A stretch of 64,000 bases of DNA from Hyphochytrium catenoides (lineage: Eukaryota > Protista > Hyphochytriomycota): assembly GCA_900088475.1 (NCBI GenBank), contig FLMG01000355.1:1-64000 (forward strand), read 5' to 3'. Below the pieces are notes generated by a model that searched no databases, had not been told where the DNA came from, and saw only the letters and a list, made by a program, of their open reading frames with translations. The position numbers and the translations under genes were made by a program. Shown here piece after piece: positions 24,195 to 48,418 of this stretch; position 1 is the stretch's first letter, and every line of letters begins with the position of its first letter.

Positions 24195-26854
24195 CAAGCG
24201 ACGATGGTGTACAAAAGTGAGAGAACAGAAGAGATATATATTCTAACAACCAGAAGAGTGTCGTGTAGAGGTAAAAGCCAAACGAGAAGGATTCAAGAGA
24301 TAGGACGACCGAGAGACAGACTCCGGAGAGAGGAAAAGGAAATAGTTTGTAGAACCGTGAAGAAGAGAGGGCAGTGGACACCTTTCTTAGACTGCTGCTG
24401 CTATGGCGAATGTGTCTGTTGGCATCTAAACAATAGCAAGAATCTAACTACGACGACGAACTGTTCTACGCTAACTACAACACCACCACTGCCCTGCGAA
24501 CATGGGATGAGGGCGAAGGTTGGTGGTGGTGTGTGTCTGTTCTCTGTACGCGCCAGTTGAAGAGTCAACAACACAAGCGACCATGTCCTTGGGCAACGTA
24601 GGGTAAACAGGCATGCGAAAATCCCTTTATAGTAATAAGCTGTGAGGGTGGGTAAGCCCTGGAACTCACTCCAGGTCCTCTTTTTGATCAAGTTACAATA
24701 CAGTTCTAGAAGGGACGGCTCCACAACCAAGAGTACAAAAGTATACACAGCGTCACTCCCACCCGACGCCGCATGGTGGGCTAGCACCTGTTTGAAGTTT
24801 GGCGCTGATGGGGTCTGGAGGCGTTTCGCAGGCCTTTTAACCTCAACTTGCAGCCGCTCGTGCACTGGAACAGCGGCTCAGTCAGCACATCCTACCCGCA
24901 CTTTGCAATAGTTTCAGATCCCTTCTGAGAATGAACGGAGGGTTGGGTGGGAGGATGTTGCTGCAGAAGTGTTCTTTACTGGCAATCTTCCTATCATAGA
25001 AAACACTAAAGAAAGAGTGAAGCAGACTCCTTGAGTTGAGTGAAGGTGCAGGAAGTATGAAAACAAGAATAGAACTGTAAGAAAAAAGGGGACAAAGCTC
25101 TTTGGTTGACAGTCTGCCTCAACATGACCAGAGAGAGAGAGATCAGGGTCAGGAAAATTGCGGGAATTATCAGTACCTCCGAGTTTTTCCATCTCAGGAG
25201 TAATATTATTCTAAGATCGGCCTCGACAAAGAGATTAAAGTTCTACTAGAACGCTGAATGTTTCAAAGAAGGGTGCGTCACAGTTCTATTTTGATCTGCT
25301 ACCCATTAGGATGTCTCTCGGAGTCTCTATCCAGCTGAAAGGCTCGTAGTAGTTGAAGAGAAAGGCGCCGTGTTTGACGAGCCTACAGAGTAGAGGGAGA
25401 AAAAGTGAGGATTTCTTAGTAGTATTTGTTATGCTGCTCCCTTGGCTGCTCCATACGTAAACAGAGAGTTCGCCTCACAACAACACGTGGTGTTGGCTTC
25501 AAGTTATCTCTGTAAAGCCTTAGACTGTATGTCTTGTTCCCGCCCTTCCTGGCATTCCCACCCGACCACCAGCATAGTATCCACTAGTGCAGGGATGGGT
25601 AAGACGGCATAGGGCATTCTTGAACACGCCGTGTGCCCAATATCTTCGCCACAAGTACCCTTTCACTGGGTACATTTTAGTGGGAGCAGGCGGCCACTTC
25701 CCAGCTTCCCACATCCGTTACGTGCTCAGTAGAACTACAGAGCAAGATCTTTGATCTTGTTTGTGTGCCGAGCACTGCAACATAGCAAGAGCTTCCGTTC
25801 ACTCCCATGATGGAGAGGGGAAGAAAAAGTGATCGTCGTAGTTCCACTCTGCACTGGGATTGTTCGTGTCCCTCGAGGCTGCGTGCTGGTGGAGGTCAAG
25901 GAACTCCTTTATAATAATAGTGCACAAGGCGATTGCTATTGCAGTTGGTGAGGCACATTGTTCATCTGGCTCGCCTTTCCATGGAGCGCATAATGTCGGC
26001 GAGCACTTTGCGCACCATCTTCAAGAACCATTTTGACTTCCTCTTTACTTGGTACTTGTATGAGTAGAACCTAAAGATCTCTTCTTTATAAAACCTTTGA
26101 GACTAGAATTTTCTCCTCTATCACGTACTGCATATGTCGGGTAATTAAGGCAGGACAGGACCCTCTTACATCGTAAGGAGTTAGCTCACCCATCATGTCG
26201 CATTTGTCTTTCAGGTGTCCAATAGCATTGGCCCATCAACAACCAAAGCTAAATATTTCTGCATTCTTCTGCGTTCTTCTATTTCATCGTCTCTTCTTTC
26301 TTCTTGTTTACTATCAAGCCTAACCCAAACCCTTTAGATTGTTGGCGACGCCTGAACGGCCTTTGACGAAGAAAAAAGACGATTAATCTCTCTCACCTAT
26401 CTTTGGGCACCTCGCGGCATACCCTTAATTTCTCAAGGCTTCCCAGGATGGGACGTGAGAACTGGTATCGCAAAGGATAGTGAAGCCGACGTTACTCCTG
26501 GACTTTACTAGATAATGGATATGTTATGATGGAATGACACTATTGATTGTGAAATGGAGCACTGCTCCTCATCGCTGACATCTTGATCAAGTTTAACATC
26601 TGGTTGAAGCCCTAGGGGCGGCGTACTTGCGCAGCGAAGTCAACGAAACGGCGAGCACCATAAACAACTGCCGGTCCCTGACGACCAACCTCGCTCCCTC
26701 TTCAGTAAGTAACCTGTCCAAGGAGTCGCAGATTAGCTCGAGCGCCTTCAGTTTCACGGAGTAACCAGACGATGTCTGTTATAAACCGAAAGAGTTTATT
26801 TTCGAAGATCGAAATGCATATTTTCTTTATAAAACAGTTATAGGACAAACTTTA

Positions 26855-29800
26855 TCATCCGCCTCCTAGTATGGTATTCAAAATGCTGCCAAAGACTGGC
26901 CCTGCTAGTGCTTTGCAGAAGATGGTCACTGGCTCCTTGATGAATAGGTCAGCAGCCATTGAGATCAGAGAGGTTGTCAGCCAAGCGTCAGCTGTCCCCT
27001 CATCAAACTTCACCCCAAAGATAAGGTTGATGAAAAAGCAGAAGAGGATAACACCCAGAGCAACTGCCCATACAACCCCCAACAGGATTCGTCGGGTGAT
27101 ATTGTTCTGTCTCCAGTGGTTGAGTTCACGGAGACGCTGAGCCTGAAGCCTAGCATGGAACCCGCGATAGGCAGCTTGGACGCGCTTGACACAAATGACC
27201 ATATGAGGTGTGATTGGCCTACCATCCACCAGAACTCCCATCTTCAAGCATCTAGCAGCAATGGCCTGTTCCTTTGCCTTGCGGCTTTCAATGAAGTAGC
27301 GAGGGCTGTAACTCATAATCGCAAGCACCAAAGCATAGATCAGCAGCAGAATACCGACCACAATCAGGGCATTGGCCCATGGCAGTAGGATAGATATGAA
27401 AAAGTCAAGGAGTAGGTTGCCACAAGGATTGCCAATGCTTGACAAAGCACAGTTGGTCTGTTTGATGTAAAGCTCGTCTGGGATTTCGTCAAAGCCACAG
27501 CAAGAGAATGTGCGCTGCACAGTCGTGAATATCAGTGCGGCCTGGTGAGCGCCTTCAGGATCCTCAAGATTTTCCAGCATTTTGTTCCATTGTGTTGCAA
27601 GCACGTTGTATGCCTTATTTCGGTATGGCTCTTCATTGGCAACAAGGTGAACGACCGTCCCTGCCAGCATCATAGCGCCCACGAGAATGACTAGAGTAGA
27701 TGCAAAGACCCGGGTTTCCGCTGGCTTGCGCTTGTGAATTGCCGACAAGCCAAAGACGCTGAGTAACGTTCCTAGACCACCAGTGGCCCCTGGCACAAAT
27801 GCAATGGTGCTGCCAAATCCGTAACCCGACTCTGGGACTGCGGCCATATATATTGCAACACCAACCATTGACAGCCCTGCCAAAAACAACAGACAGGCAA
27901 CACCCATCAGGATTTGAGGTAGAAGGCTAAAGGGACGATAGGCCTCGCTGACGCCAACCATGGGAGACAAGTCTTCCTCAGCAACAATTGTCGTTCTAGG
28001 AAGAGGTGGGCCTTTGACTGAGCGCTCCCCTCGAGGTGAGAATGAGTAATCCTCATTCATATTTTCTAAGTGTTCGAGCAAGTTCTGGTCCGTCTTCGCC
28101 TTTGCCGGCTTCTCCGAGGGGCTCGAAGGACCCTGTGCAAGGTCGACAGGCGCTTGCGCATCCTCCGATGCTGGACTGACTGGCATCTTTGCATCACGAG
28201 CTTTTTGTTTGCCAAAAAGGACGTCGACAGTAGATTTGGCAGTGGCCTTGTCGTGCTTGCTGCCCAGTTCCTTGATTTGCATATCTTCGGCCTTCTTATG
28301 GTCAACATGCGGTCCAAGTAATTTTCTTTTAACCCTCTTTGAACCTCTTTGCAGATGCTCTTCGATAAAATCCAATGTGGTGGACTTAATTGGATTCTGA
28401 AGCTTCATGAAAGCCATTGGAATTCCAACCTCCACAGGAAGCATGATGCACATCGATATCAGAGATACCACCAAGGTCTTGGCAAAATTATCCTGTCGCT
28501 TGCCATAGAAAACTGCAGCCACAGTGAAGGAGATCATAACCGTTGCGCAGAAAACGGCAACCCGCTGAGGTCGGGAAAGGGTTACATGAGAGTGAGTTTG
28601 AGGCTTGAGAATACTGACCCACTTGCTCTCTTCCCTTAACACGCCTAGAATTTCGAACAGCATTCCCTTCGTATAACCATAGACTGCTGTTGCGTATCGG
28701 TGTGATTTGGATTCTCCGGCGGGGACGAGGCCAGTCTTGTCCATTTTGTCCTCATTGTCAAGCTCCTCGGCGTCTTCTTCTTCTGCTTTGTACATTCCCT
28801 CCTTGAGATATACGTTGGTCAAGTACTCATTGAGCTTCTCTTGGTCGGATTTATCCAGGAAGTAACCCATGACTCCTACGATAAGGAACCCTCCCAAGAC
28901 CGAGCACAGAATGATAAGCGGAAGGGGGTTGTTTTCATAGAGAACTAATAGCTTTGCATCTCCGATTGGGTCCACCTAGATCATAACAAAATGAGTACGG
29001 AGATTGCAGCTTAAACTCTGGAAGGCCCTGCCAGACCTTAGTCCCACCTGATTGATTTCGGGAAGCAAAGTATCCGCCGAAGAGCTGAAGTCCGTCAGAT
29101 GGGTTATCTCACAGTCCAAGTAGATTACAGCGTCCTCTAGTACTACTCCGCGTTGAAGTAGGCCGTCAGTGACCCAGACTTCTCGCTCCTTATCCCAGTA
29201 CCTGCAATCAGGAAACGTATCTGCAACGAAAAGGTTAGCAACATGGTTGCGGTTAGCAATAGTAGCACGCTCATCATCCAACCCCACCATTGGGAATATA
29301 CTTGACAGTGATACGCATTGAGATAGGCTTGGTCAGGTTTGCTACTGGTGCGATGCTGTTGGCATCCCCCTCTGATGCCGTGAACGAGAGTACGGCAGAA
29401 GACAGGCTCTGATTATTCTCGCTCCAGATGTAGGGGTTCGAGCTCCATTGGATAGCCTGTCAGTAACCAAGACATCAACCAGTTTGTCACCTATTGGGAG
29501 CTACGCACTGAGAAAGAGTTCATGCCTGCGCTTACCTTTACACTGAAAGAGGAGTTCTGACTAGAAGAACTGGACAGACCTTCAGGTAGCGTCAATCTGG
29601 GCCCATTGGGCACAACAAGGTCTGGTCAAGATTAAACTTTAGAGGAGGTGAAGAAAGTCGCGAACACCGAAGCTTGTAGGTGACTCTTACCTGTGGGGCC
29701 ACTAATGTCTGACCGCGCTGCTGCCAATGAGATCTTATCGCTGGAGAGGGTCACTGGTGTTTCTCCAGGTAGCGATTGCGACAACAAGAGGTCTCCAAAA

Positions 29801-32800
29801 CTGCTAATCAGACTGACCATAGTCTCACTGGCCGTCCGGACTGGATCACTTTCTGCAGCAGTTAGCCTTCGCTTCTTACCCGTGAGTTTTGCATTTTTTG
29901 CCTGCTCGGATGTGGCGGTGAAGACATTACTGACAGCCCCTAGAATGGTTGAGCCCGTGCTCGGATCTGGGACGTTTTTGATAGAGGTAGAAGAGACGAT
30001 GAGAGTTTCAACGAAGTCCAGCGCCTTATAGGAAGTCTCCGCATTAAGCTCCTGAGGAGATGACGTGATGGTGCGCAGAGAGACTGCTCCCTGCGCCAGA
30101 GCTTCCGGCGAGGGATCCTAATGACCCAACAAAAATGTTAGAAAGCTCTTCACAACTCGAATCAAACTAAGAGGCGCTCTTACGATATTGGCACTTGCGG
30201 TGATGACGGCGTCAAGGAGTTGAGACCTGATAGCCTTCCGAGCTTCCACTTCGGCCTCGGTAAGAGAGCAGTCTGCTCCACTCCAGCCCTTGTCACATGC
30301 ACAACTGTATTGGCATCCATTACTCACACTACACCCCTGTTCTCTCACGCAGACACCGTGATTGGAGCACTCCGGAATGGTGGGATCTGCATAGGCCATC
30401 GGTGTGCCTATTGTACAATCGCGTGAAACGCAAACAGGTGATTAGTGACATCCAACATCAGGCTCGATGGCTATCCCAATGAATTTACCTGCAGGATAAG
30501 GCGGACAGAGAGGAACCGGTGCTGGGCAGAGTGCAAGGTTGCACTCCCTGGTCTCAGTCATGGGTCCAAGGCGAGAGCAATCCTTTCCTCCTTTCGATGG
30601 TGCGGGATTGGTACAAGCCCGCTGTCTAGACTGCGTTCCAGGGAAGAACCCTCCCCTGTCTGAGGGGCAAGAGGAGGAACATTTGCTCCAGTCACTCCAC
30701 TTCGTGTAACCCCCATCTGCCATAAAGTGAGGATATGAGTTTTCAATCTAAGCGTCTTTGACGAAGGTCTTACCTATTTCTTTCTCGCAAAGTTCACTGT
30801 TGCAGAGTTGCGTCTCTTCCGCAGCTCCTGAGCAAGGGTTGCCACCTCCACTGGGGGGTGGATTGGTACAGGTCCTCCACCTCTTTCGGACACCGCCACC
30901 GCAACTAACGGAACAGGGTGACCATTCAGTCCAAACTGACCAGTTGCCGTCAATTACTGGTGGCTTTTCACACTTTTGACCAGAGTAACCGTTTTTGCAG
31001 TTGCAAACGCCCTGCTGGCAGGAGCCATACTGTCCGCAGTCTAGTCCTCTGCAGGGGTCAGCCAGAAGACTGCCCAGAATATTGACCACCGTCAGTACAG
31101 TGTCTGCGCCACTTGCTTTAGTTGATCCGAGAATGCTTGAAGCGTTGGCAGTAAGGAAGGAAGTAGTTAAGGAAGAGTTGGGACCTCCACCTCCCCCTTG
31201 TCCTGAGTCACTTTGCTGACCGAGACCAAGTGGAAGGACTGACACCAGTGCTCGTGACCCGTCGTGTAATGTATCACACCGAGTGCTAGCTCCCAAATTA
31301 TCCGCCACGTAGACTACAATTGTGTTCAAATGGTCCTTGCCTTGGCCCTGGGGTAGCATGGAGCTGTAGGATGGACTATCTCGGAAAGATGATATCAGGG
31401 CTACCTCCTGCGCAGTCGTTCCGTTATTAGCCATGGACATGTTGCCACGTGTGTACTTGTACCAGTAACTGAAGGGATAGTCCGCGGCGTCGTCTGTCCA
31501 TGAGCTAGAGACGGCGATGGTGAAAGTCGTCTGGAGCACGATGCCGGTGGTTGGCGTCACAATAATGAAGCCACTGGAAGGAGGAGCATTCATCACAATG
31601 GAGATTTTACCAACGCCATCTCCATTTAAGGTTGAGGCTGTTAGCGAGAATGTGTAGGTCGAGCCCGGGTTGAGACCATTAGGTCTAACGACTAGCTGAG
31701 AGCCCGTGATACTAGTGGAGCTGAGGCTAGCGATGCTAGTGGAGGTACCAAGTTCATCCTGCGGAATGAGAAATGCATCCGTGAGTAGGGTGACCAAGGA
31801 CCAGCTAATGCGGTAATGAAGCGTCGTAGAGTTCAATAAGAGGGATGGACAAGGGAGACTTAGGAGGACGCCTAAATATAGCAGCCCATTGAGTGGTGGC
31901 AAGAAGGACTGGAAGGCTAAGAAGGATGTCTTACAATGGACCAGAGAAGGGTATAGTCGGGCAATGTGGAGTTTACTGTGGCCAATAAGACAAGCCGTTT
32001 GGAGGGGTCGTGCTTTCTCGCTTGTACTTGAGAAAAAACCTGGACGACAGGTGGTTTGCCGTGTGTGAATGACAAGATGGTCTTAGCTGTAGCAGTTCTA
32101 TTGCCGATGATATTGTTCGAAGTGCTCTTGTTAAACTCCAATGCAACTTGGACCCTGGACGCTGGCGGGAACATTCCCGGCGGTATGTTAATCACCGAGC
32201 CATTGTTAGTCGTATACTGATTAATGTCGAGCGTCGCATTGGTCCCAGCTCTAAGACATGGTGCCTGTTGCCCGGTATTGGGTAGAGTTGCGCAGCTCCA
32301 TCGATAAGAAGTTTGAACACCGGCTTTGATGTCGTCGGGGTCTGACGACGCACTTCCGTCCAAGCGAATCCAATCATCGGACCCCGCAGTTCTATCGCCC
32401 CCTTTAATCCTGAACGGGTGGAAAGGCAAATGTTGATTAGGTACTTGACGACCAAAGCTTATTGGGCATGGTATCTTCGAATCTTTGCTGAGTCTTTCAA
32501 GCATCACAAAAGCGGCACTTCAAGGACCTTACCAAGCCACTAGGTCACTGGGCATGACTGTGATTTCCAAAGTGGCAGAATTATTCAATGACTCATTCTT
32601 GAACAGGCTCACCCAGCAGGTAAAACGGTACTGCTGGCCGGCATTCAGCAAATTTGGAGAGATCCGAAAGGATCTTGGATCTCTCATTATGCCACGACTG
32701 ACGTTTATCTGGTGGACATCTGTGGATTCCTGAATCCAGTTGAACTTCAGACCCGACGTGGAATCTGTACTATCATTCCCACATGAGAGCATGCTGGTTT

Positions 32801-35800
32801 CAACTCTTACAATGACATCTTCGCTACGCCGTATAGCCCTAACGTGATTGGTTAGAAATACGAATACGCTCACCGCTACAGCCAAACCTACACGAAGCAT
32901 TCTGTTGTTACCTACCTTGACGAAGCTCCAGCAATTTTAACGCTCGGAATGTTCTGCTCCGACTTTCTGAGCATTACCGCTGCTTGGCCTATTGTGGAGC
33001 TCAGGTAATTAGAGGCTGAAGCGGTGAAGTTGTAGGAAGACCCGCTATTGAGTAGTCGGCTTGGGACTCGCACAACCGCTGCCGTCGTATTTGTCAACAG
33101 GACCGCCAACTCTGCTGAGATGTTCTGTGCCAGTAAAGATGCGTTACTACAAAGAGAACACAATAGATCACTATCCCTATTGGCTCGTCACCTGTTCAGA
33201 GGATGCCACACTCCATGAGAACGCCATTTGCCTTCCTCCACTACCGCGAGACAGTGATGCATCCATAACAAGGTCCTCACAGGATCCGAGAGTGGATGGT
33301 GCTAGTAACACCACCTGCGGCAAAGGGGGGTTGAGGGGGGGCAGAACCGAGATGCATCCTGAGGATGATGCAATACTTCCGGTCACAGCCTTAAGGGCTC
33401 CAGTTCTTAAGGTAAGTGATCGACCAAGTGGGCAGGATGTGAGCAGGCCGCTGGACTTTGCCTGCATGTATGGCTGGATTGTTGCCTCAGAACCCAATCG
33501 TAGACTGATTGTGGTGGCGTTCTCCCAGAGACACTGGGCCCCGCTGCCCAGATAGGACACTGTGGAGGAGTCAAATGCTAGAGCACAGTCTACAAACCCA
33601 GTTTGTCCCGAAATTTTGAGGTCTGTCAATCCGCTGAAGCTGACAGCGATAGAGGCACCCGTGTCAGTGAAGCGAGCTAGGACCAAAGAGGGAGGTGGAA
33701 TTCTTCCCTGGAGGAGAACTAACCCTGACGCAGCTACCCCTGTTTTGCGTGATATGACCTCACCACGAACTACAAGTGGAGTCTTATCAGGTATCGAGGT
33801 GGTCGCGTATTGAGTGTTTCTAACTGTGATGTTTAGCGTGGTTTCGTTGAGCCAGGAACAAGACGATTCTCTCCCCAACAGCTCCCAAGTGGTCCCATCA
33901 AAGATTAGCTCTGGAGTGCAAGCACTTTGAAGAGTCTCAACGGGTTCGTCGAATGCCATCAGGATTGTGTTCGAGGTCTCTAGCAGTACCGCAGAGCGCA
34001 CAGTAGGGGCGTTGGGTGGCACGTACACGTGATTATGGATTGTACGCACTGGATCCGAACCAGATGCACGCCATCAAAGATTATGTATTAGTGGAGTCGG
34101 ATGGGAGGAAACAATATGATTTAGCATTTCCATCAGTAAAGCATCACGTGGTCTCCTTACCTTCAATGGATACTTGACTGAGGCTGTAGGCCCTATCGTC
34201 TGAGGACGTCACCAGTGTTATGATGGTGCTATGGTTGTTGACGGGAATACTGGCATCCTGCGGGACGATAGTCGCTGTGACCAGCCGTGAGATATTCCAA
34301 TTCTGTGATGTAAACACTATAGAGCTGATGTCAAGCACAACATCGCTGATGTTGCTACTTGTCAGCCGAAGCACAACGTCCGCCTGCGGTCGAGACCTCA
34401 GAGATAGCGTTAGCGAAGCGGTCATGCCTATATTCCCAATGGGGCGTTCAGCAACGCTAACAACCCTACTTGACACTGTGAGACCAGGCATATCCACCTC
34501 GGTAACTAGGAACGAAGTTGTAGGTAAACAACTGCCATTAGCCAGTACTGCAAGAATCCAATCGCTGTTCGTGCTCTGCAAGGTCCCAAAGAGGTTAAGG
34601 CAGCTCTGTTCCCCAGGACTTTGCCATAGACAATAGTCTGCAATGTAGCGAATGCAGCCTAGACCATCTTGATAGCTTCTGCACCGCTGAGTATTGCAAG
34701 GACTTCGTTGGTCGTCCCAGGGGAATGGACACCGTGTCTCTCTGTTGGTAAGCGAGAGTACTGCATTCAGCAGTTTCGTTTCAGCGTCCGGAAGACTGAT
34801 ATCAGATGTATTCCATCCTGACATGGAGAAGGGGTTCATCCAGTTGAACATTGAGATAGACGTTCTAGTTTCCGACTGCTTGCATGCTGTGCAGTCCGAA
34901 AAAAACGTGATATTTCTTGGAGCTGAGTCACCCCCGAAAGTGATTGTTGTTCCAACAACAGTGTCGTTCTCCCTTCGCAGCGTGAGTTCCCCCCATTCTC
35001 CGTCGATGTGGTTCTCCCACCGAGCGGTCGCGCTCCGCATGCCGTAATACGAGAAGTTATATACTGAGATGTTGCCCTCAGAGAACTTTCCGTACCCGTT
35101 AGAGATGAGCACCGAACCCATAGAGGTCTGCCAGACACGGTCGTCCATCCACCTAACCCACCCCGACTTAATGACATCCGGACATGTTGTGACACAGCGT
35201 TTACCGGTCCACTTAAAAGCAATTTCAGTTGCACTATGCTCAAGTCCAAAAGAGATAAGGATTTCTGTCCCATCCCAACTCCGGGAGACGGTAAACAAAC
35301 CTTTCATGGCGCTACTATCATCAACCCAAGTCCCTCCAGCCGTGGAGGGGCTTGAGTAGAGAATTGAGGCCAGGGTCATATTAAATATAGTGGATTTGGA
35401 CGAAGACTGTACAAGACCAAATTCACCGTGGATAGCCACATAGCTACCATTGCTGTCCGTCCAGACCCCGTGAAACCATAGACGGTCAGTCCAAAGAGAA
35501 GAGGGCAGAGATTTGCCAGGGCAGCTTGGAATATTGTAAAGGGGATTGTTGCTTGAAGTTGACAGGGCGACGATCGCCGTTCTCGCTTCGACTGCAGCAA
35601 AATCCCTACTGCCCGACACGGAGAAGTTTCTAGTTCGACTAGAGTTTTGGTCGAACACGATAATGGACGGGCTGATCGTGACATTGCTACCGCCACCGGT
35701 GTCCAAACTCTCCACCTTAAGGATAACAGGAGAGAGAGGATCGCCAACAAGACTTGCCGAGAATTGCAGAGTCTCATTTTCAGCGAGTGTGAGCTGATTA

Positions 35801-38800
35801 TTCCTTCCCAAAATATTACCCGACGCCAGCATGATCTCAACCCCAAATCGCCGCTGGAAGCGGAAGGAGATGGCGTTTGATGTTACTGGCCAACCAGAAG
35901 AGGTTGCCAATACTGTATCCATCAGCATTCCAGCGCTTGGGCGAGCTACTGGGCTTGGTGTTACATAGACGTACTGGATTGTCTGAGAAGGATCTGAGAA
36001 ATTATAGGTCAGACGGGCTGGGAAGACTTGGAAGTTACCGAGCGCGCTGCTGACAAAAACATTTAGAACTTCGTATGGAGCAACGAAATCCTTGGACCAT
36101 TGTACCCTTACGGTACCAACAGAACCGTTCAACAGTCCTCCATCCACAAAGTCCACGGGAATGAGCTCTATATCTGGCCGTATGCTCTCTCCTGTACCCA
36201 TCAAAAAGTGCGGGAGACAGGTTGGCCTTTGCGGTAGATATGGCCATGATATCCATGAGCGCACTACATCCGAATCACACGAGGATGGGCTGCTGGGTTG
36301 CATGTAACGACAATAGTCTCGGACATACTCTCCACACCAATCTAATGCTGCCTCAGATGGGACGCCCACATGACCACTCCAGAGTACTTCGCTTAATAAA
36401 GAAAGAACAGAGACAAGGAACGCGAGCGAACGAAAAGGTGTCGGTCAGAGCGGTCTGCCGTAGCATGGGTCCACTATGCTACATCTCATTTGTTTCACTC
36501 CTTCCGAATAAAAGCGCACTCACCTGCAGTTTCGGACGTGACAAGGGTTCATAGGATGAAGATCATCATGAAATAGACAGCTTCCTGGTGATAGGTGGGT
36601 ATGGAGCCACTCCAAAAGAGCAGAATGATTGTAGATGGCACGCTGGCCAATATGAGAATCATCACACGTCGGAAGGTCAGAGTACAGGGGAGACAAAGAC
36701 GATCGGGTTGTGATATTGAGTTGATTCCCCTTGTTCAGAGATTCCTTCGCAGCATCAGACAAACGTAACCATGGCGCCGACTTTCTCTCAGACGTCAAGA
36801 AAATTCCGTCCTCGGGCAAGATCTCGCCATCCATTGTCTGAGCTTTAATTCCATAGGTCGAGACCCACGTGACATTCACAGAAGCTTGCTCTTGAATGGT
36901 GTTTGACAAAGCAAACCTCAAGAGCATGGTCCTAAAAGAGAGGGCACCAGGCATGACCAATCAACACCAAACAGACCGTGAGAGATTATGAGCACTTGAG
37001 GAGAACAGGGTACGGCCATGATAAAACGATCTCAACGCAGCAGAGAGATATAACAACTAGGAAGAAGATCACGTTGCCCGATTCGAAGTTCAACTTACCA
37101 GGGCGATAAGCGCTTTGATGCAACCCGAAGACCTTTGTCGTTCGTGACTCTGGTCCTGACAGAGAACGAGCGGCTCCACGTCCTGCCAATAAGATTAAAG
37201 GATATCACCTGGTACTGGATAAAGTTCCCGTTTGTGGGTTCGGTAACAGTTGAAGTACGAAGATAAATCAGGGTAACAGCGCTGGCACTATAATCGAAGC
37301 TGATAGACCGTGAGAAATTTGCACAAGGTCCACTGCTTTCCATTGAAAGAGCACAAATGCCAATGGTTGCGTTCTGTGTCCCCGCTGTTGCCATGGCAAG
37401 GGAAGAAATGGACAGTGTGAACGGAAAGCCTGAAGGATGGAATTGATTGATAAAGGGAAAAACGAGCTCTCTTATCCCGCTATCTCCTTGCAGGATCAGT
37501 CCATCGACTGCAGCTGTTGCGGCATCAAATTTGTTCTCATCAACAACCATTAAAGTGAGCGGAGAGGCACATTGTCTAGGACCCAAGAGAAGAGCGGGCT
37601 CCTTTCCGAGAGTGTTTCTCATGTCTGCGAACAGATTTATACAGCCCAAGTCATCTGACTGAAGCCAGAGGCAGTACTCGATTATTTGCTGCACGCATTC
37701 ATGGTAACCATCAAGTGAGAAGCAAACAGGATTCCGGCATGGGGTAAGAGGATGTGCAGGGCTGAAAGGACAGCTATCCAAAAGTCGACCTATTCTTCCC
37801 AGTGAGAGAGTAAGGCTTGAGAGCGGNNNNNNNNNNNNNNNNNNNNNNNNNNAAGCCCCAGTCTTCATTGCTTCCGTCATAGGTCCATGGTGAATTGATG
37901 ACTGCAGGGCCTTCCCTTGTTACAGGCGCCTCCAAGTTGTAGCTGGCAATGGGTGGCGGTAGTAGCTCGAAGCCACATGAGGAACATAGGCTTGCCTGGA
38001 CGTCGCGTACTTCGAGAGCTGCTGTCTCAGCTGATGGGGTTTGGGCTGCCATCTTCAGTAAAAAGCCCACACCACTTTTTATTTTTTTAAGGGTTGCTTG
38101 AAGGTAGTGCTTGACACCTTCGGGGGCGGTATAGGTCACATTGCAATAGTACAGATTTGAGCTGTTTGCGTACACACGGCTAAAGGTGAGATCCTGACGC
38201 TGAGCCTTCACACTGTTTGCTGAAATTTCCAAGCGGCCCCATTCTGGTATAATCCAGACGCCTTCAAGCCATGAGGCCTGACCTAAATCGCTCTTGAGCT
38301 GGGGCAGTAGAGCCAAGCCACAAGTCTCGTTACCCATCTCCTCTGGAGTGCAAACACGTCTACCCTGTATGAAGATCTCCTTTCCGGCTTCTACTCCGTT
38401 AGTGAGAGCACCTTCAAATGAGTCCGTCCCGTCCGCCTGGAGTTCTATGATGCCGTTCGAACCAACAGGGAGGGTTTCCCCGCCGGAATAGTACCACTTC
38501 CCAAAGACGGTAGCATTCTTGCCATATAAGAGTGATCGAAGGACAATTCCCCTTGTGATATCGTTTTTCAACACGCCGAAGCTTCCATATATCTCCATGC
38601 GGCCCAGAGAGGTGTCCCATACGCCATCCAAGAAACCTCCCAGTCGTGAGAAGGCAGCTAAAGGTACTGCTGTGAAGTTATCATTGCCTAATCGTCTATC
38701 GGAGGGACAGGAGGACCAACGCAGGAAGGGATCAGAGCTATTAGACGACAATTGTATAGTTGTATTGTAGTCCATGAAGCTAGAGTTTGACGTGGCCATA

Positions 38801-41800
38801 CGCACTGTGAAAGCGGCCGTTCCTGCTCTCTCACCCACGTCGAGCCCAAATGAGCTCTGAGAGAGTATGATCCTCGGATCTGCAGAGTGCACATCCATCT
38901 TGAACAGTAGGGACTCGTTCATACGTCGCGGATAACGATACTGTATTTCTACCTCGGTGTGAGCCGATTCTGTGATCGCTGGAGTGACGGTACTCAATTG
39001 CAGGCCATAGGGATAGTAGATCGAGAAAGGAATACAGATTGGCGCTGTCGCATTGATTGCCGCGTCGTCTGATCTTGCTGTGAAACAAAGCTGCTCGTAC
39101 AGCAACGGTCTGAATATTTCAGGCTCTGCGGCAAGTGACACTGTGATAATTCCTACTGCCGTCCAGTTGCTATGTGAGAAGCTGACAGACGGGGCTGCTG
39201 TCAGGCTCGCCAACGTATGAAGAGATGAAACCTCGACCAAGACTGAGGCGTTTGGAGCTTGATTCAGCTTTACGAGGACATCATGAGTGCTGCCCCCCAG
39301 TTGCGAAGTATAAGATGGCAAAGATGCGTGGATAATGGAGAGAACGTTGTCCGACGTGCCAGAACTAGCAAGAGTGCTAATCGGAGGAATGCAGCGATAA
39401 TAATCTCTGAAAGTGGTCCACTTTGTCCATTCCAGAATTGAGGAATGGCCGCAAATTGGGGAGGAGAAGCCTATTGAACCATCGTAGAGACAAAGGTCTG
39501 TTGCATAGCCCTTACATTCTCCGCTCCCAGTCAGTAGGAGCCTATTGGAAGCAGCATCGTAGTGGTGCCTGAAATAGGTTTAGATAAGTCAGATGCAGGA
39601 ACCATTGACCATTCCAACCAGTAAGCAACCTACCGACATACTCCCACTTGGCACAGAAGAGAAAACTCCGGAACACTGCAATCTAATGAGAGATTCGCCG
39701 GTGAAGTGCTAGGATAGGTAAACCCCTCTGCATTGTAACAGCTTTGGAGTTCAGAGAACTCTGGTACTGTGCTGTTGGCCGTAAACTGCAGCTCCAAGTC
39801 CATCGGGAGCTCCTTTGAAACGTCAATGGCTTGCACCGTGAAGAGGATGGGACGGTTGAGTCGGACAACTATCTCCGACGTATTTGGGTTCATAGACTGA
39901 ACCTTGATGCTGGTACTGCTTGAAACATTTAGTTGAACCAGAACTTCCTGGGCTGTCGTTTTTTTTGGAAGAAGCATTGCTTGCAGGAAAGCCGTTCTAT
40001 GAACGCGAGGATACGAAAGAGTTAGCGAATCATTTGATACGAGGAATTTTTTGTAGCTTACCCGTCCGTGGTTAGAACTGCTTGCACTTTAAGCTTCTTT
40101 ATGTCGTCATCGATGAGCCGGAGTCGTACTTGTTGCCTCGAGGTTATGGTGAGGACATTATTGGAGTGGTCCACTCCATAAGCCTGTAGATAAAATTCTA
40201 ACATAGACACTGTTCTAGAATTGACAATGGAGTCTTTATAGGACCTCAGGAGCATGGGGACCGCAGCCGTAGCCTCCAGCTCACCCCGCAAATAGATTGC
40301 AGAGAGTCCCCCGGGCACACACAGTGCTTTTTGGGTCACAGCCGCGGTGCAGAGGTCATAGGAGAGCCTTGGATCTACAAATACGGGAATCAAGGTCACG
40401 TATACCTTTGTGACGTCCATTGCTAGCCACTCAGGTCCAACAGGCGCTAGAAATAGGTCCCGGTGACCCTCCACTATCTTCATGCCATCAATAGACGATA
40501 GATCGAAGACGTCCAAGGCGGCCTTAGGTGCAACTGGCTGGAATGGGTTGCAGCCAAGGATACCTGCGGTTGTCATAAAGGGATATGGGCACCCAAGTTC
40601 AGGCAAAGCTAGAGCAACATTAAGGCAACCTCCATCAGCTGGATTAAGGAACTGGCAGTAGCGGCGCACGTAATCGAGGCATTCACTCGAATCTTGAACG
40701 CACGCAGGGCTGTGGCAAGGCGATATCGCGGTCCAAGTATCAAAAGGGCACCCGCTGGTGCTACCGAGGGCNNNNNNNNNNNNNNTTGTGTTGGCAGGTC
40801 ATACCATATTTCTCCAGTGTCAGTACGAGTGTATTGCAGTACGGACTGGTTGGTGCTAGGTGAGGAAAGAAGGATTGAACCATGAGCCGCAGCCTGCTCG
40901 TCGTACCAAGACACCTTTGACGTCGTACTATTTAGTGGGACGACAGAGACAGGTATAGAGTGAATGACTCCAGATACGTTTCTAAGGAAAAATCCAATCC
41001 GGTCTCCAAGCTCTAGAGTACCCAAAGAGGTCTCCCAGATTCCGGTGATGGCTCTATTGGGTTGCTCCGTGTTACCACCAGCACATGAGCAACATCTGCT
41101 TCCATCGACGATACCGATGATGACATTTGGATCTGTGATTGCCATGGTAAAGCTATCGTGCTCTGCAGAGAAGTTCATAATGAACTCAGAAGAAATGGAT
41201 TCACCGACAACTCTAGTAATCGTCCCTGATAGTGTGGAGCTTCCGTTGTGAAGCAAAGTATGGAGCACATACTCCGATCCCAGAATTCCTACCAAGCGAG
41301 TGAGCTTCAGGTCACCCATAGTTGTGTTCCAATGGATGCATTTGAGCCATGTAGGATCTGTAAAGTCCTTATATTCCGGCCCCAGAATAAGAGAATCATC
41401 CTGCTTGGTTCCCATAATGCTCTGCAAAGGTTGCGAGGAGTCTAGGACAAAATGACCTGTCAGCAATGTTCCCTCCTGATTGGCCACCTCTAGCTCCATG
41501 TAAATCGGATCTAGCGCCTCGTTTGATGAACCCATACCGTAGACCTTTGATCCTTGTGGACTATATTCGATGGTGAGGATAGATCGATGGCTGTTCGAAA
41601 GCTCCAAGGTCGCAATGTTACCAAGGACCTGGAGAAGGCCGACCGTAGTAGACCATACGCCGCTCAACCACCCTCTTACTCCCTCGCTAATCGTTGGGAT
41701 AGCAGCAGTCCTGTTTGCTGTCGTTGGACCAGGACATGCGGGGACATTGTAGGACATATCACCACTTTTGGTTTCAAAGCTGAGGCTGATTTCCTTTAAA

Positions 41801-44800
41801 GCATCTACAGAATCCACTGGGAGCTCGACAACAAGTTCATTCTTACTCGCGTTCGAAGAGCCAAAAATGGTGATAGGTTGGTTATCCACAAAGACCCTTT
41901 GTCCTGCTATGTCCAACACCGGTATAATTGTCACCTCCATATCGACAAATCGACTAAAGTCGATGGAAGCTTTGGTGGTAAAGTGACCTGATTCATTTAA
42001 GCTGATTCTTGGAACGACTGAAGCCCCTCTTTTCCTTACTACCTGGAAATGCAAGGGCTGCGAAGTACGCCCGCTGCTGTAGAGCAAGTCAGCCGAATCT
42101 TGCACTTGTAGATATATCTCGTCTATTCGAAGAAGGTCCGGAGAAGGAAGAGTCCCTACCATGACTGTGACCGTCTTTGGAATACCCCAGTCACTCTCCG
42201 AAAAGCTCACGCTGCTGGGAACTGATTGCAGGATGTCAGACTTTGCTTTCACTTGTAACACGACTGTTCCGCGCGGTGGTTGGGGTAATTTGAGGCTAAC
42301 GTTAATGCTAGAGTCCTCAGGTATCGTTGTGAAGTCAAGGCCATACCCTGACGTTGAGCTAAAGGAGACGAGGAAATCTGGCGAGCTGATACTTCTCATC
42401 GCTACCGGTTCTAGACAAGCAATGAGGGTTGTGCTGAGCATGCTTTTCCACTTCTGTATTTGAGGGTCATGGCAGCCGACTTCGCCAGAAAATTGAGGAG
42501 AGGAGCAGAAGTTCACTACGAACTGTTCGCAAGAAGTTCCCCACTTCTCCGAATGTCTCTCTCGTGCTTGACTGTGGCATGGCTTGTAGGCGCAAGGTGA
42601 AGAGCCTGGCCCATTTGTTTGAAACGGGCATGTTCTGCCTCCTGGTCCCCAGCCAAAAAAGTTTCTATCCTTCCAGGTTGATCGCGCGTACGGTGGAGAC
42701 AATGAACATGATGTAAGGTTAAAGCTAGGATCCGAGCTCTCTAAAGCTATTGCCACTCTCCTGGTAGCATTGCCGCTATAAACCTTTACTCTGCGGGGTA
42801 GGTACCATGCTTCTGATGAGATCGACAACGCACTGGATAAAATTGGGCTTCCTGCTCCTTCAGGGATCTGTTCCAGACCGTAGTATAGCGTTGTTTTGCC
42901 TTTGGGCGGGACTAGAGCCCGAATCTCCAGCTCCAGCTCCTCGCTATGCTCTGTGGTGGGCACATGGACAACCCTGACTGGATATTGCTCCCGTATCCAG
43001 ACAAGGAAATGCAGGTCTGTCGTGTGGATGTTTAATGTAGGATCATCGCTAGCCACGTGGAAAGAAAGCGTCTCCAAGACCCAGGGCGCGGAGGGAGTCT
43101 CATCAAGCCCCATCACCTCGAGGGTCAGGAGCACGTTCTGGGACTGGTTGTATTGAGTCCACACAATTTGACTGTGATCACCCTTTAATTGAAGCCTACC
43201 AGTAGCAGAGGTCATGGTAGTCGAAATGGTGTATGTAGATCTAAGATGTAGGCTGAGTTTGATCGGAATTGCAGAGGCTGATGACAACACTCCGCCGTCC
43301 TCAAGCCCGTCAATCGTGAGCACTTCTGGAAGAGGCGGGAGAGTAAGTTGCAATGGCTCATAGCATGCATCGCCCTCTCTATAGGAAGGAATGAACTTCT
43401 CATCCTCACTTTCGCTATATCGTACTCCTTCCCAAGCGCAGGCTGGATCAATATTGGACCGACAGAAGCCCTCCAATAGTTCCTCACAAAAGGAGGAAGT
43501 GTAAAAATGTGTGCCATTGCCGCACAGGTTGAAGGTACAGGGATCAAAAGCGCTACTACCAGAAGTAGGACATGGGACAATAGTTCCTGCTTTCTCCGTT
43601 GAGCTTTCCCAATCAGTGCGATGCTCCCAAGCAGGACTTTCATCATTGGTGTTGTCAAGGATGGCCTGGCAAACCGTAGAGTTGAAGTTGATGCTGGAAA
43701 CATTATAGAGTGGATCCCCGCTAACTGCAAAAAAGTGAAGCTGGAGTTTGGGAGTCACTGATGCAAATGACAGAGACTCTAAATCAAACCTGACCTCTGA
43801 AGACCAGTTGTCAGGGGTTACTACGGTCGTGAAGAGTACCTCTTCCTCGCGAGGTCCTTCTCCTGCATCAAGAATAGTATCTTTCCAGTCTGGGGTTTGG
43901 GAGACGTAAAGATTCAGAGAGACTGACGTGCTGGGCATGACAGTAGGTCGAACTGATAGACTTCGCCTTTGGGTGATATTGTTCATCACAATGTTGGCAC
44001 GAAAGGGTATTCTTGGTCTACGAACCCGAAAGCGCACAATGCTGGAGCCGCTTGTCGTAGCACCGTTAGAAGGCGCTAGAGAGAGATTTAGGCCCCCAAA
44101 TGCGGGCCCGTTGAATACAATAGCGCTTGCGCTTTGGCTTGAGAAATGTATCCGAACCAGCTGGGTTCTGTTCCAGGTAGAGGATGTGAAATTGAGGCTC
44201 GATGAGCTCACACTTCCTAGTCCATTACCGAAAGGAGAGAGGGTGGCGCTGACCGCTGTAGTGCCAGCCAACTCGTGACGGAGTTTAACGCCTACAGAAA
44301 GGAAAGACCCTAACTCGACTGCCATACCATCGTAGGCGCCCTCTATGATGAAAGGATCGCTGCTAGAAGGTGAACCGTCCATTTTTATCATCCCACTTGA
44401 ACCTGTGAGATTAACGATAATGGGACTAAGGCAGCCTGGCTCAGACATCTGTTGTACTCGCCCAATAACAGCCTTGGTGGCATCTTGGGAACAGCTTGGA
44501 TGAGACGGATCGATATGACTGCAGAATCTTGCAATCTGAAGCATGCAAGGCAGGGATAGTCTAGAGCACCACCCCAGCGTGCCCGGCGGTAAGCACTCAT
44601 TCCGGCTGCAGATGCCAAGTAGGCAAGGGTTGTTCGAAGACATAGCGCTCTGAGTATTTGAAATGGGACACTGCTCAGAAGAAGAGCCAGCAGTTGGCGG
44701 TTCAGGCCATGCAGTAGGACAGGAAGATAGGATAGGAGCGGAGGAGTCACTTTCATGCATTGAAAATACCACCTCGCCAGGTGTAGAAATTGAAGCGTTA

Positions 44801-47800
44801 GTTGAGTCAGCCAAAGCAGAGCGGCGCAGAGCAATCGTAACAGAAGCCTGAGAGTGGTCCTCAAAGCGAAGAGTGGCAGTCCTGGCAGTGCTGCTTTCAG
44901 TCATGAGTCCCCCTCCGCTTAAGAAATGTTCCATATCTAACAGTAACGAGAGCGAGGTGTCCAACCGTACTGAGACAGGATATACCGGTTGATATGCTAG
45001 AGCCAAGGTTAAGAGTACGTCCTCTTTCCACGGCGAGCTTAGAAGTCTCCTCTTGATGGAAGGCTGCGTACTATCGCGAATATAGTATGTCCGCTGAAGG
45101 GTTCTTTCTACGGTTCCGTCCATAGACACGGCTCTTATTAGTAAGCTGTCTAGATAGATGGGCCGCTGCTCTAATCCATTGTCTCGGCATCCAAAGTGGA
45201 CTTCAACGGGCTGAGACCAGTTGTTAGAGGAGAAAGTAATCGGAAAGTTCACGTGCGGGAAGACTAATAAGCCGTAGAAAGGCGATACATGCAGCTGCCA
45301 TCCTCCGGCCATCGAAAGAGGCTCCGCAAATTGTATCATCATGGTGTAGAGACTGCCCTCCTTTAGTGTGCTGCCATCCATGGGCATGTCAACCACCAGA
45401 GGATATGAATGCAAGCTGTCTAGCGAAGGTGATGGCGTTAGCCAGACTGCGTCGTGGAACTCTTCCCTAAGTTCATAACAAGTACTGCTATTCTCAGTCG
45501 CAGTGATTTGACATTGATGCCGCAAGTCCTCTGCGGGACATGTGGCTCCGTGGATTAGCAACCTAGGGACCCCAAGCGCAGGTTCAGCTTCGTATGTGAC
45601 CTGTCGGTAAGCAGTGGGACCGTAAATCAGTTAAAGCAACAAAACATTACGCCTGGGACACACCTGCAGATACGAAACAGCCGATTTCGTTGTCGCTTCA
45701 TTCGTCTCCAAAGGTTTTCTAAAAGTAGCTTCATCTGTGAGGTAGGTCACTGAGAAGTTCTTATACATAGCTGGGTTGTCAGCCGTAATACTGTAGTCTA
45801 AAGGACGTAGAAACTCTCTGGAGAGCGAGACTTGCACCAGATGTGTCTCTAAGGACCCGTTCGTAGTTAGTTGCGGTGCGCTCCCTTCAAATCTGACTGC
45901 CTGAACTTCAAATGGTGGAAGGGTAGTGTGGCCGCGGAAAAGTGCCACAAGGTTAGACCTACTTTGATTGAACAAGGCATCCTTTGACTGTGCCTGGAAG
46001 AAAACTCCATCCACAAAAACATTCTGTCGCCAGTCGCTTTCTTCGAAGGGCTGTTCTCTTGCCGTCCTATAGACCAACAATCCGTACTGCAATTCACTCC
46101 AATTCTGAGGACTAAATATGAACACTTGCTGACTTTCCGTATCCATTGCAAAGGTACCAGCTAAGCTTGTGAACACGACTTCAACAACTTCGGTTGGCGC
46201 GTAAAGTAGATGCACCTGAAAGGCGATGGTGTGGTTAACTAAAGCTGTCTGGGGGTTACTCGTCGTTTGAGTAGAGAAAGAAGTATGCAGTAGTGCCTGC
46301 CCCTCCGAGCTCTCATACGAAAGCGGTGTCTCACAAATTCCGGTCGGGGCATCAACATCGCGGTCCGCGAGATACTGCCTACATGCCTCTGATTGAGCTA
46401 TTGGAGCTGAGTAGGTACAGTACATTTTTATGAAAAGGGAACAGTCTCCTGAGCCGAAGTTCTCAATGCAAGGCTTGTGCACACATGGAGAGAATGGACT
46501 TGAGTCCATGTAGAACGGACATTTGCTTTCAACCCCTGTCCTGTCTTCGCCGTACGTAGGATGACTCTTGGGCCGTGATTTCAACATAGGGCAGGGGTAA
46601 GAGTGCCCCCCAGCATCGTGGTACGAAAAGGCCAACTGGTTCCTATTCCTAATGCTGTCACCGAGATCGTCAAAGCGCCACATTCTAGTCAAGCTGAGGA
46701 CACGTTCTATATGCCAATTGTCCGAGGTGAAGGTTAAACTAGAAGAAAGCACTCTCGCACCCACTTCTTCCATCAGAACTTGAAACTCAGAGGTGATGTT
46801 AACAGTGGCGGTTCCTGATGGCGCCCTCCGCAACTGGACTCCGATCATAGTGGTAGCTCCAGTCGAAGATATAACTCTTGCACTGACGAAAGATGACGAC
46901 GAGTCACGTATCCGGAGTGGAAGCACTGTCTCCTCTACCATAAGGTCGTCTGTCATGTCGTGAACACTTATGGTTGCTACCGACCAGGTCTCCGCTAGCG
47001 ATGAAGCCGTTGAAGCGCTGCTGGGAAGTGGGATTGTGACTAAAGCTTCAAATAGACTATTCCTCCGCGGCATTATTAGGGTTGCTTGCAAGTTGACATC
47101 ATGTGAAAAGGCAACCCAAGCCTGGAGGTGTCTAGCTGCGAGGTCCTTATTCCCGTCTTCGTCATTGAACGTTGGAACGCAATAGATGCTATCTTCATAG
47201 GTGCCCTGGACATGCAGGTTGACGCCTAAACCGCCCAAGAGCAACACCTCCTCTGTTCCCTCAAGAAGGACTGAGGTAGTCATCTCTCCTTCTGCTGTGC
47301 TAACCGCGGCTGCAGAGACTTTAATTTCTTTGGACGATGGCTGCATGGAGAAATGGGAATAGTCAGAGAAGAATGTAGGGCGTCAAGGAGAGAAGTCTAA
47401 TCACCTTCCACAGCCAGACTCCTAGCGGTCTTGTGGAATCTGCGACGGAGGCATTCCATGTACAGGATTGGGTTTGCAGTCCGCATCTGGAGAAATAGTA
47501 AGAGCCACTTGCGAAACCAAGGTCATCACTTTGCGAACTGTTGATGACCGGTGTTGGTGGGCTCTGCGGCCAACAATTAGTCTCCAGAAAAGGAGACATC
47601 GGCCCTTCCCAGTGCAATGGAACCAAGAGCTCTTGGTCCCCCAACTGGTAGCCAGCTTGCAGTCTTTTGACGACAGGATTATAGTCCATGGCTCTGGTCT
47701 TCACAAACCTAACAGGAAGAACAGCAGAAATAAGAACAAAAGGGACATGGGAAATTTTGAACAGGATGAGAGAGAGGAGAAAGGGACTCTGAGATAGTTG

Positions 47801-48418
47801 AAACTACTCATCATCTTGGGCTTACTCTTGATGCATGTTTTTCTTAGTTCCAATTAGAACTCCAGCCCCAGGAGTCACCAAAAAGTTCTTGACTGTTAAA
47901 GGCTGTGTGATAGACTGCCCTTCCCCTTGCGAGTCACACTGGTAAGCGTGCAGCAGCTGGATGTTTATATAAACCTCCATAGGATATTGACTCTTGAAGA
48001 GAACATTGCAAGTCAAAGAATCTGATTCTAGAGTAGAGTTCACAGGAGATACTGCGTGCTCCAACAATGTTGGCCCTGCCCACTGATGAGCGTCAAAGAG
48101 GCGGAGCTGCCTGGCAGACTTTAGGGCTTCAACAGCAGCCGCTTTCGGTCGTGTGCGAAACCACACACCTTTCTCGTTTGGATTGCCCAAGAAGATGTCC
48201 GTCACGCTGCTTGAGATCTCATAGATTAGGTCCAGATCGTAATCGTAGTGAGGGACCCCATCAATGCAGCGTGATATTCTTGTCCAGTCATGAAGATTTG
48301 GCTGGCAAACCTCGGAAGCTTGAACAAGTTGAACATTCCGCGGTGCCAACAGCAGTAAACAACAACTGTACAAGGCCAAAAGGGCCACAAGGCTTCTTGG
48401 ATTGTCATGGGACACCAT
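26855..48418 (-). CDS. Giant polycystin-1/REJ-GAIN-like cell-surface protein (~6,500-6,800 aa): signal peptide, Calx-beta-like repeats with Cys-rich inserts, REJ, EGF, 2xTSP1, EGF, GAIN/GPS, 5 PKD1-like TMs with an embedded tetraspanin and IQ motif
   Basis: Contiguous minus-strand ORFs joined by GT-AG introns and two N-gaps. Signal-like [25 protein letters not shown]; REJ ([36 protein letters not shown]...[12 protein letters not shown]); TSP1 ([20 protein letters not shown]); GPS (CRYWD....W...G...[10 protein letters not shown]); TMs ([10 protein letters not shown]...AVFYG; [14 protein letters not shown]...DLFIKEP). An alternative in-frame ATG lies at 48523. Confidence 0.85.

Follow-up and report, generated by a model that had tools for sequence, protein, structure and literature searches.

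Tetraspanins are regarded as free-standing organizers that bind their partners non-covalently, and assigning a partner to a given tetraspanin is usually hard; among animal tetraspanins, which act in cis on the export, clustering and shedding of partner receptors, CD81 serves CD19 and GPR56, and Tspan15 serves ADAM10. Most dominant polycystic kidney disease goes back to mutations in polycystin-1 (PC1). Here we describe a locus of the protist Hyphochytrium catenoides in which the two kinds of protein are joined: a whole tetraspanin very probably lies inside the cytosolic loop between transmembrane (TM) helices 3 and 4 of a five-helix, PC1-type receptor core. The DNA analysed, here called the window, is a stretch of 64,000 nucleotides (nt; positions 1 to 64,000 of contig FLMG01000355.1, assembly GCA_900088475.1), and all coordinates refer to it.

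For the receptor part, the closest described system is the PKD1/REJ family, with human PC1 and sea-urchin suREJ. As the sea-urchin REJ proteins illustrate, the number of TMs is variable in this family (PMC1934368). The window protein shares with this family the REJ domain and, by a sub-threshold match, a putative GPS with a predicted HL^T site adjoining TM1, and it shares with PC1 the pre-TM2 motif W.S...(F)TR.QR, both hairpins (TM2-TM3 and TM4-TM5) and the long cytosolic loop between TM3 and TM4. In contrast to PC1, it lacks PLAT between TM1 and TM2, the S1-S6 channel-like half, the TOP domain and the coiled-coil tail; its TM3-TM4 loop holds four extra TMs (the tetraspanin) and an IQ-like helix, and its ectodomain is made of TSP1, EGF and unrecognized repeats.

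For the inserted part, the closest described systems are the tetraspanins themselves (CD81, CD9, CD53, Tspan15, the uroplakins and peripherin-2). Four TMs, a short first extracellular loop (EC1), a second (EC2) with CCG and two Cys, a full-length Pfam match, the predicted fold including EC2, and two ends that are cytosolic (in our case by prediction) are common to these proteins and the window domain. They are stand-alone proteins of about 25 kDa, whereas the window domain is internal to a receptor of several thousand residues. Complexes of GPR56/ADGRG1 with CD81/CD9 also place a GAIN/GPS adhesion receptor and a tetraspanin in one membrane; there, however, two genes encode the partners and the receptor core is of the 7TM type, whereas the window case is one chain with a five-TM polycystin-type core. 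In the searched literature, we found no description of such a fusion and no paper containing both 'tetraspanin' and 'REJ domain'. The component families are known, and their combination is undescribed in the searched literature and unnamed in public databases.

A tetraspanin domain within a single exon

The last exon of the gene occupies 26855..28975 on the minus strand, as do all features reported below on that strand. It is an uninterrupted open reading frame (ORF) of 706 amino acids (aa) that encodes a stalk, nine TM helices and a TGA stop, with host modules on either side of the tetraspanin. A first-pass annotation of this DNA had seen the tetraspanin helices in a single 706-aa exon, and the ORF was as described there.

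Pfam Tetraspanin (PF00335) matched this exon with an E-value of 5.6e-12 and 46.2 bits, relative to a gathering score of 32.1, over positions 4-223 of the 225 in the profile, a match well outside what chance would give. The domain, with helices T1-T4, spans 27320..27913 (aa 355-552) and was recovered by Pfam, by profile comparison with the PDB and by Foldseek. From hydropathy and the AlphaFold model, its TM helices lie at about aa 352-384, 389-415, 418-447 and 518-556, or, more narrowly drawn, at 352-378, 391-414, 419-447 and 519-556; EC1 has about 12 aa, and EC2, between helices 3 and 4, has about 70 aa with four Cys. EC2 contains the CCG signature (TGC TGT GGC, 27494..27502; C492, C493 and G494) and the further cysteines C509 and C518. 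Hence, the four hydrophobic helices, the CCG and the two additional Cys that had been read from the sequence in the first-pass annotation are all present. Among 14 family members with the insert, CCG was invariant (14/14) and the last Cys was kept in at least 90%.

Corroborating the Pfam result, the profile of these 14 inserts (A5) matched CD53 (3.4e-11) and CD81 (1.9e-10) in the PDB, and its top matches, with E-values from 3e-11 to 9e-9, were exclusively tetraspanins, TSPAN7, CD9 and TSPAN15 also among them. AlphaFold modelled the whole exon with a mean pLDDT (predicted local distance difference test) of 76 and a pTM (predicted template modelling score) of 0.57, and the tetraspanin domain with 85.3 and 0.74, respectively. 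In Foldseek searches of the PDB, the first 10 matches of the whole exon and the first 13 of the domain were tetraspanins without exception (CD81, CD53, CD9, PRPH2/ROM1, Tspan15 and uroplakins; probability 1.00). For the domain model, the query-normalized score (TMq) was 0.61 for CD53, and CD81 (7jic_B) scored 0.57/0.61; crystals of the isolated CD81 large loop gave target-normalized scores (TMt) of 0.57-0.60 at a root-mean-square deviation (rmsd) of 3.1-3.5 Å. Since it is an internal part of a giant receptor, we refer to a tetraspanin domain and not to a classical tetraspanin protein.

Polycystin-1-type helices on both sides of the tetraspanin

Ahead of the tetraspanin, TM1 (28856..28927; aa 17-40 by hydropathy, helix 18-59 in the model) comes right after the GPS stalk and is followed by the pre-TM2 motif (W.S...SRPQR) with the TM2-TM3 hairpin (28361..28678, aa 100-205; family profile A2). 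A cytosolic linker of about 145 aa (27929..28360, aa 206-349) then leads to the insert; its C-terminal 120 aa or so (about aa 231-349) are charged (24 Lys + Arg, 24 Asp + Glu) and poorly conserved, and the pLDDT below 50 at 231-294 and 309-349 predicts disorder. Behind the tetraspanin, a TM4-TM5-like hairpin (TM8-TM9) and the C-terminus occupy 26858..27100 (aa 626-706; family profile A3).

We found that the best PDB match of A2 was PC1 (6a70_B, E 7.4e-9), at chain positions 233-332, directly after PLAT. PC1 was also the best PDB entry for A3, with a weaker E-value (0.0066), at chain positions 550-603, and the two matches are collinear on PC1. In agreement with the profiles, a structural scan made independently of Foldseek ranked PC1 (8z6b_A) first among 48,161 chains, with 192 residues aligned at 19% identity and an rmsd of 4.9, so that model residues 1-687 correspond to PC1 3064-3610 (TM1-TM5); TM1 is inside this alignment. 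Hence, the tetraspanin does sit between the counterparts of PKD1 TM3 and TM4, where the first-pass annotation had put it.

Pfam found no PLAT domain in the exon, and the TM1-TM2 loop is about 95 aa long, acidic and predicted to be helical or disordered. At the PLAT position of PC1, the exon has a short acidic low-complexity stretch (28679-28855, aa 41-99), and a close relative (P0001, described below) has a poly-Asp run there. The six-TM channel-like half (PKD_channel/TOP) and the coiled-coil tail are absent: the ORF ends after TM9, and no Pfam match follows downstream. Pfam also gave no 7tm_2 match in the exon, and the helices after the GPS match PC1 instead. The earlier reading of a polycystin-like membrane region is therefore right for TM1-TM5, with REJ and a putative GPS, and does not extend to a full polycystin, since PLAT and the channel-like half are missing.

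Upstream exons and gene structure

We searched the exons one by one, each as a separate sequence. Upstream of the last exon, a GPS-motif exon (29048..29290, ending ...PEINQ at 29048) was recognized from a sub-threshold Pfam match and a Cys..Cys..HL^TDF pattern at 29084-29212, in which the predicted autoproteolysis site HL^T corresponds to 29093-29101. In relatives, Pfam GPS was above the cut-off (37.8 bits in P0099 and 23.9 bits in P0010). Between the GPS and the REJ region, TSP1 and EGF-like exons lie at 30118..30723 (TSP_1 23.4 bits, above the cut-off; EGF_2 22.0 bits relative to a cut-off of 22.1). Still farther upstream, ORFs at 30748..32900 encode REJ domain pieces and one repeat each of the EGF-like and TSP1 types (TSP_1 E 1.4e-14). 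REJ (PF02010) matched three consecutive upstream ORFs with E-values of 4.4e-25, 7.3e-13 and 0.0013, and the three matches are collinear on the profile (16-86, 88-247 and 248-406). The 706-codon exon is thus the last one of a very large gene on the minus strand, which encodes an adhesion-type receptor of the polycystin-1/REJ lineage with a putative GPS.

Splicing would join the GPS exon to the last exon across a predicted GT-AG intron of 72 nt, in which a TAG lies in frame (28976..29047; CAG/GTGGGA ... TCTAG/GTGGAC). At the relative locus L001, a GT-AG intron of 86 nt is found at the same codon position, and it alters the frame, so splicing is obligatory there. At the other end, the stop codon comes three residues beyond TM9, and transcript-derived relatives likewise end 10-60 aa past the last TM hairpin module. 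A probable poly(A) signal, AATAAA (26795..26800), lies 55 nt past the stop; hence, the gene probably ends there.

Predicted topology

By hydropathy, three TMs precede the insert and two follow it, so that with an extracellular GPS the chain has nine TMs in total. The predicted inner loops are rich in Lys and Arg (12, 24, 3 and 13), and the outer loops are not. These data are consistent with a predicted arrangement in which the CCG loop and EC1 are outside while the ends of the tetraspanin and the IQ-like helix are cytosolic. Because the insert comes after three TMs, the tetraspanin would start in the cytosol, as tetraspanins must, and because its helix number is even and its ends are predicted cytosolic, insertion would leave the host topology unchanged. 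The last two helices would bring the chain back to the cytosolic side. The nine-TM topology with an outward CCG loop that the first-pass annotation proposed agrees with this prediction, and we found neither an absence of tetraspanin matches, by profile or by structure, nor a predicted topology with the CCG loop in the cytosol.

Relatives and history of the insertion

An alignment of the exon with one close relative (P0001) served as query for an exhaustive HMMER search, which returned 214 proteins, mostly large and up to 6,545 aa long. Common to them are two modules, pre-TM2/TM2-TM3 (W.S...TRPQR) and the last two helices (INL..GVKF...W..S...D...P). The closest, P0001 at locus L001, aligns with 98% of the exon at 35% identity and has EGF and GPS exons upstream.

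Both host modules are present in 37 representatives, which we sorted by the content of the TM3-TM4 loop. The loop was 21-65 aa long and free of TMs in six (Rigifila ramosa P0099, P0105, P0128, P0081, P0098 and P0116), with 22 aa at the tetraspanin position in Rigifila. Hence, the tetraspanin is a true insertion. Five further loops were TM-free and bore the IQ motif. Four TMs with CCG between the third and fourth were found in 13 of the 37 (P0001-5, P0007, P0009, P0011, P0016, P0020, P0032, P0049 and P0104), and at least four closely spaced TMs without CCG in 11; P0015 and P0090 fell outside all four classes. When four insert-bearing representatives were scanned with Pfam Tetraspanin, P0005 and P0011 were above the cut-off and P0002 and P0004 just below.

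Where a member of the tetraspanin class has a named source, it is a Trinity/MMETSP transcript from Cantina marsupialis, Bicosoecida sp. CB-2014 or Platysulcus tardus, all three deep-branching heterotrophic stramenopiles; the remaining members come from environmental contigs. Single transcript ORFs carry TM2-3, the tetraspanin and TM4-5 together, with GPS detected in the Cantina protein P0004 and IQ in P0004 and P0005. Hence, the fusion exists in single mRNAs of named species. Database entries of this build are UniRef100_A0A7S1C6T6 (Bicosoecida sp. CB-2014), automatically named 'PKD/REJ-like domain-containing protein', and, in EukProt, P017152 and P008202 of Cantina marsupialis and P002572 of Platysulcus tardus; they are uncharacterized, about 20% identical to the window exon, and mostly have the IQ-like motif. 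The 35% identity to the copy in another organism, together with recurrence in stramenopile transcripts, indicates a real and selected architecture.

Two members extend the family past the stramenopiles, P0146 from the green alga Pedinophyceae sp. YPF-701 (CAG9463240.1) and P0099 from the CRuMs protist Rigifila ramosa. Channel-less, PLAT-less, five-TM polycystin-1-like receptors are thus an old eukaryotic family in their own right. For a tree of the host modules, these were cut out and concatenated (window aa 101-205 + 623-706). In this unrooted tree with a weak backbone, the insert-free members all fell in one well-supported clade, and the tetraspanin-bearing rows were scattered over the poorly resolved remainder, with seven changes of which at least two are forced. 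Because of the weak backbone and the missing root, one gain with losses and several gains fit alike.

The 11 representatives with CCG-less inserts are P0018, P0061, P0150, P0092, P0119, P0058, P0013, P0008, P0010, P0072 and P0025 (Cafeteria roenbergensis KAA0159266.1); their loops have four or more close TMs, no large loop and no Pfam family. A reading of these inserts as decayed tetraspanins was unsupported (hhalign probability 12.8% for A6 relative to A5, and no Pfam match). They are either a second type of four-TM insert or a tetraspanin altered past recognition.

An IQ-like motif ahead of TM8

Between the tetraspanin and the last hairpin, a long helix (aa 590-623) runs into TM8. Within the stretch 27143-27190, it carries an IQ-like core, VQxxxRGxxxR (27149..27181), whose residues V599, Q600, R604, G605 and R609 satisfy the consensus [FILV]Qxxx[RK]Gxxx[RK]. 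P0001 keeps the motif (IQTAYRGYRDR). Across 90 family representatives, the strict IQ pattern was found at most 70 aa before the last module in 31 (median 28 aa), relative to 0.11 expected from shuffling.

The motif is also present in relatives that have no TM insert (Cafeteria roenbergensis P0012, Pedinophyceae sp. P0146, P0051, P0053 and P0070). Hence, it comes with the host loop and not with the tetraspanin, and the idea in the first-pass annotation that the two were inserted together does not hold.

The family profile of the segment, searched against 1.8 billion sequences, also retrieved the tandem IQ-repeat proteins P0052 and P0087 (9-14 repeats). P0052 (1,414 aa), P0087 (1,517 aa), P0131 and P0139 match solely through 5-14 tandem IQ-like copies and are otherwise unrelated.

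Proposed mechanism and alternatives

The occurrence of the same build in other stramenopile protists suggests that the two kinds of protein work together. It is a reasonable inference that the fusion acts as a 'Rosetta stone' and may link these receptors to tetraspanin microdomains and to Ca2+/calmodulin control. In the mechanism we propose, cleavage at HL^T would leave a nine-TM C-terminal fragment, and the large loop of the tetraspanin would end up outside, beside the GAIN/GPS stalk. The built-in tetraspanin would be a permanent cis partner, packing laterally on the TM bundle of the receptor and/or capping the juxtamembrane ectodomain, and could control export, clustering or shedding of the cleaved N-terminal fragment. 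Calmodulin or a calmodulin-like protein may dock on the IQ-like helix near the membrane, as a cytosolic read-out or regulator.

Three published findings bear on this mechanism. GPR56, a GAIN-cleaved adhesion G protein-coupled receptor, forms cis complexes with CD81/CD9, and its N-terminal fragment depends on them for shedding (PMC6092491). PC1 and TSPAN4 colocalize on retraction fibres and migrasomes (PMC10487028). Calmodulin is bound by the PC1 tail through a non-IQ motif (PMC4999191).

We consider the fusion architecture with a built-in cis tetraspanin and an IQ-like read-out the best explanation overall, with a probability of roughly 70%. The specific combination of a cis scaffold with calmodulin is tentative, and we would put it somewhat short of even odds.

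Several observations weigh against this explanation. Foldseek E-values were modest (about 2e-3) and identity to animal tetraspanins was 12-18%, so the domain is a divergent, though genuine, tetraspanin domain; a word-index search with the tetraspanin part among proteins of stand-alone length found no stand-alone tetraspanin near the insert, a weak blank given the length and word limits of that search. On the host side, the structural match to PC1 had a Z of 13.7, which is weak on its own since helical bundles give a high background Z, so homology rests mainly on the sequence profiles. GPS (PF01825) reached 18.8 bits in the window copy relative to a cut-off of 22.5 (profile 1-43/45). Pfam IQ (PF00612) gave 13.7 bits in the window copy and 17.1 in P0001, both under the cut-off of 20.3, and hence we call the motif IQ-like and not a curated IQ match. 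In the one run available, RNA at the locus amounted to only two 151-nt contigs (27382-27667) with no joints, so the joint with the GPS exon and the end of the transcript are predicted from the DNA.

The low IQ scores are also what one would see if the helix before TM8 were a basic amphipathic juxtamembrane helix for acidic lipids or for packing on the TM bundle, and not a calmodulin site. The segment is indeed very Arg-rich and immediately precedes TM8, and about two-thirds of the relatives examined do not keep the strict pattern. However, Q, RG and R stand at exact IQ spacing, conserved in stramenopiles and as far away as a green alga, and the profile of the segment reaches tandem IQ-repeat proteins, and we regard a non-calmodulin helix as rather unlikely, if with an appreciable chance. 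The IQ motif named in the first-pass annotation stands as a conserved, consensus-matching sequence and falls short as a Pfam IQ domain.

If the tetraspanin instead acted in trans, it would link the receptor to tetraspanin webs or cholesterol-rich microdomains and not to its own core or ectodomain. Free tetraspanins arrange many partners laterally (GPR56/CD81/integrin, PMC6092491), the linker between TM3 and the module, most of it predicted disordered, would permit independent movement, and the whole-exon model reaches a pTM of only 0.57. However, the module is tethered to TM8 by about 70 aa, mostly predicted helical, and a covalent fusion raises the local concentration in favour of cis contact; we consider trans action unlikely. 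A gene-model artefact, either chance read-through of an independent or nested tetraspanin gene or a pseudogene copy, would fit the sparse RNA at the locus and the purely mechanical ORF list. That 706 stop-free codons span both flanking host modules, that a relative with 35% identity and transcript-derived ORFs of three named species have the collinear build, and that CCG and the host motifs are invariant make such an artefact highly improbable.

Implications of a covalent receptor-tetraspanin pair

With the cis fusion as the preferred explanation, evolution has fixed one receptor-tetraspanin pairing in a single polypeptide that persists in distant protists. The tetraspanin is paired here with TM1-TM5, the part of PC1 about which least is understood. 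A prediction for animal cells is that PC1 TM1-5 would bind a tetraspanin. With neither a channel half nor PLAT, the protein is also a natural minimal system for the function of TM1-TM5 and of GPS cleavage. In addition, the TM3-TM4 loop appears as an insertion hot spot that accepts TM modules of even number with the topology undisturbed.

A bolder reading, which we think quite improbable, is that PC1-type TM1-TM5 and tetraspanins are an ancient specific pair, covalent in stramenopiles and in trans in animals (TSPAN4/CD81-type), in which the large loop would cap the GAIN/stalk and gate release of the ectodomain and IQ/calmodulin would be the cytosolic switch. If true, this would assign a function to the TM1-TM5 domain of PC1.

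Further observations

A look-up of the exon in the ESM Atlas gave no usable match. Minus-strand ORFs downstream of the gene had no Pfam domain, and the large upstream ORFs at 33177-48523 had no Pfam family. The latter form a minus-strand chain of 290, 741, 261, 515, 203, 1650, 571 and 233 aa. These more than 4,000 aa of unrecognized sequence probably make up the distal ectodomain encoded by this receptor gene.

In the tetraspanin class, P0104 (2,454 aa) has a much longer large loop in one uninterrupted ORF. Its cluster, defined at 90% identity (P0167-P0180), contains the same 2,454-aa length on 13 ENA/JGI/Logan metagenome contigs of about 8-11 kb and a shorter Tara fragment. The source of this cluster appears to be an abundant, apparently intron-poor marine protist.

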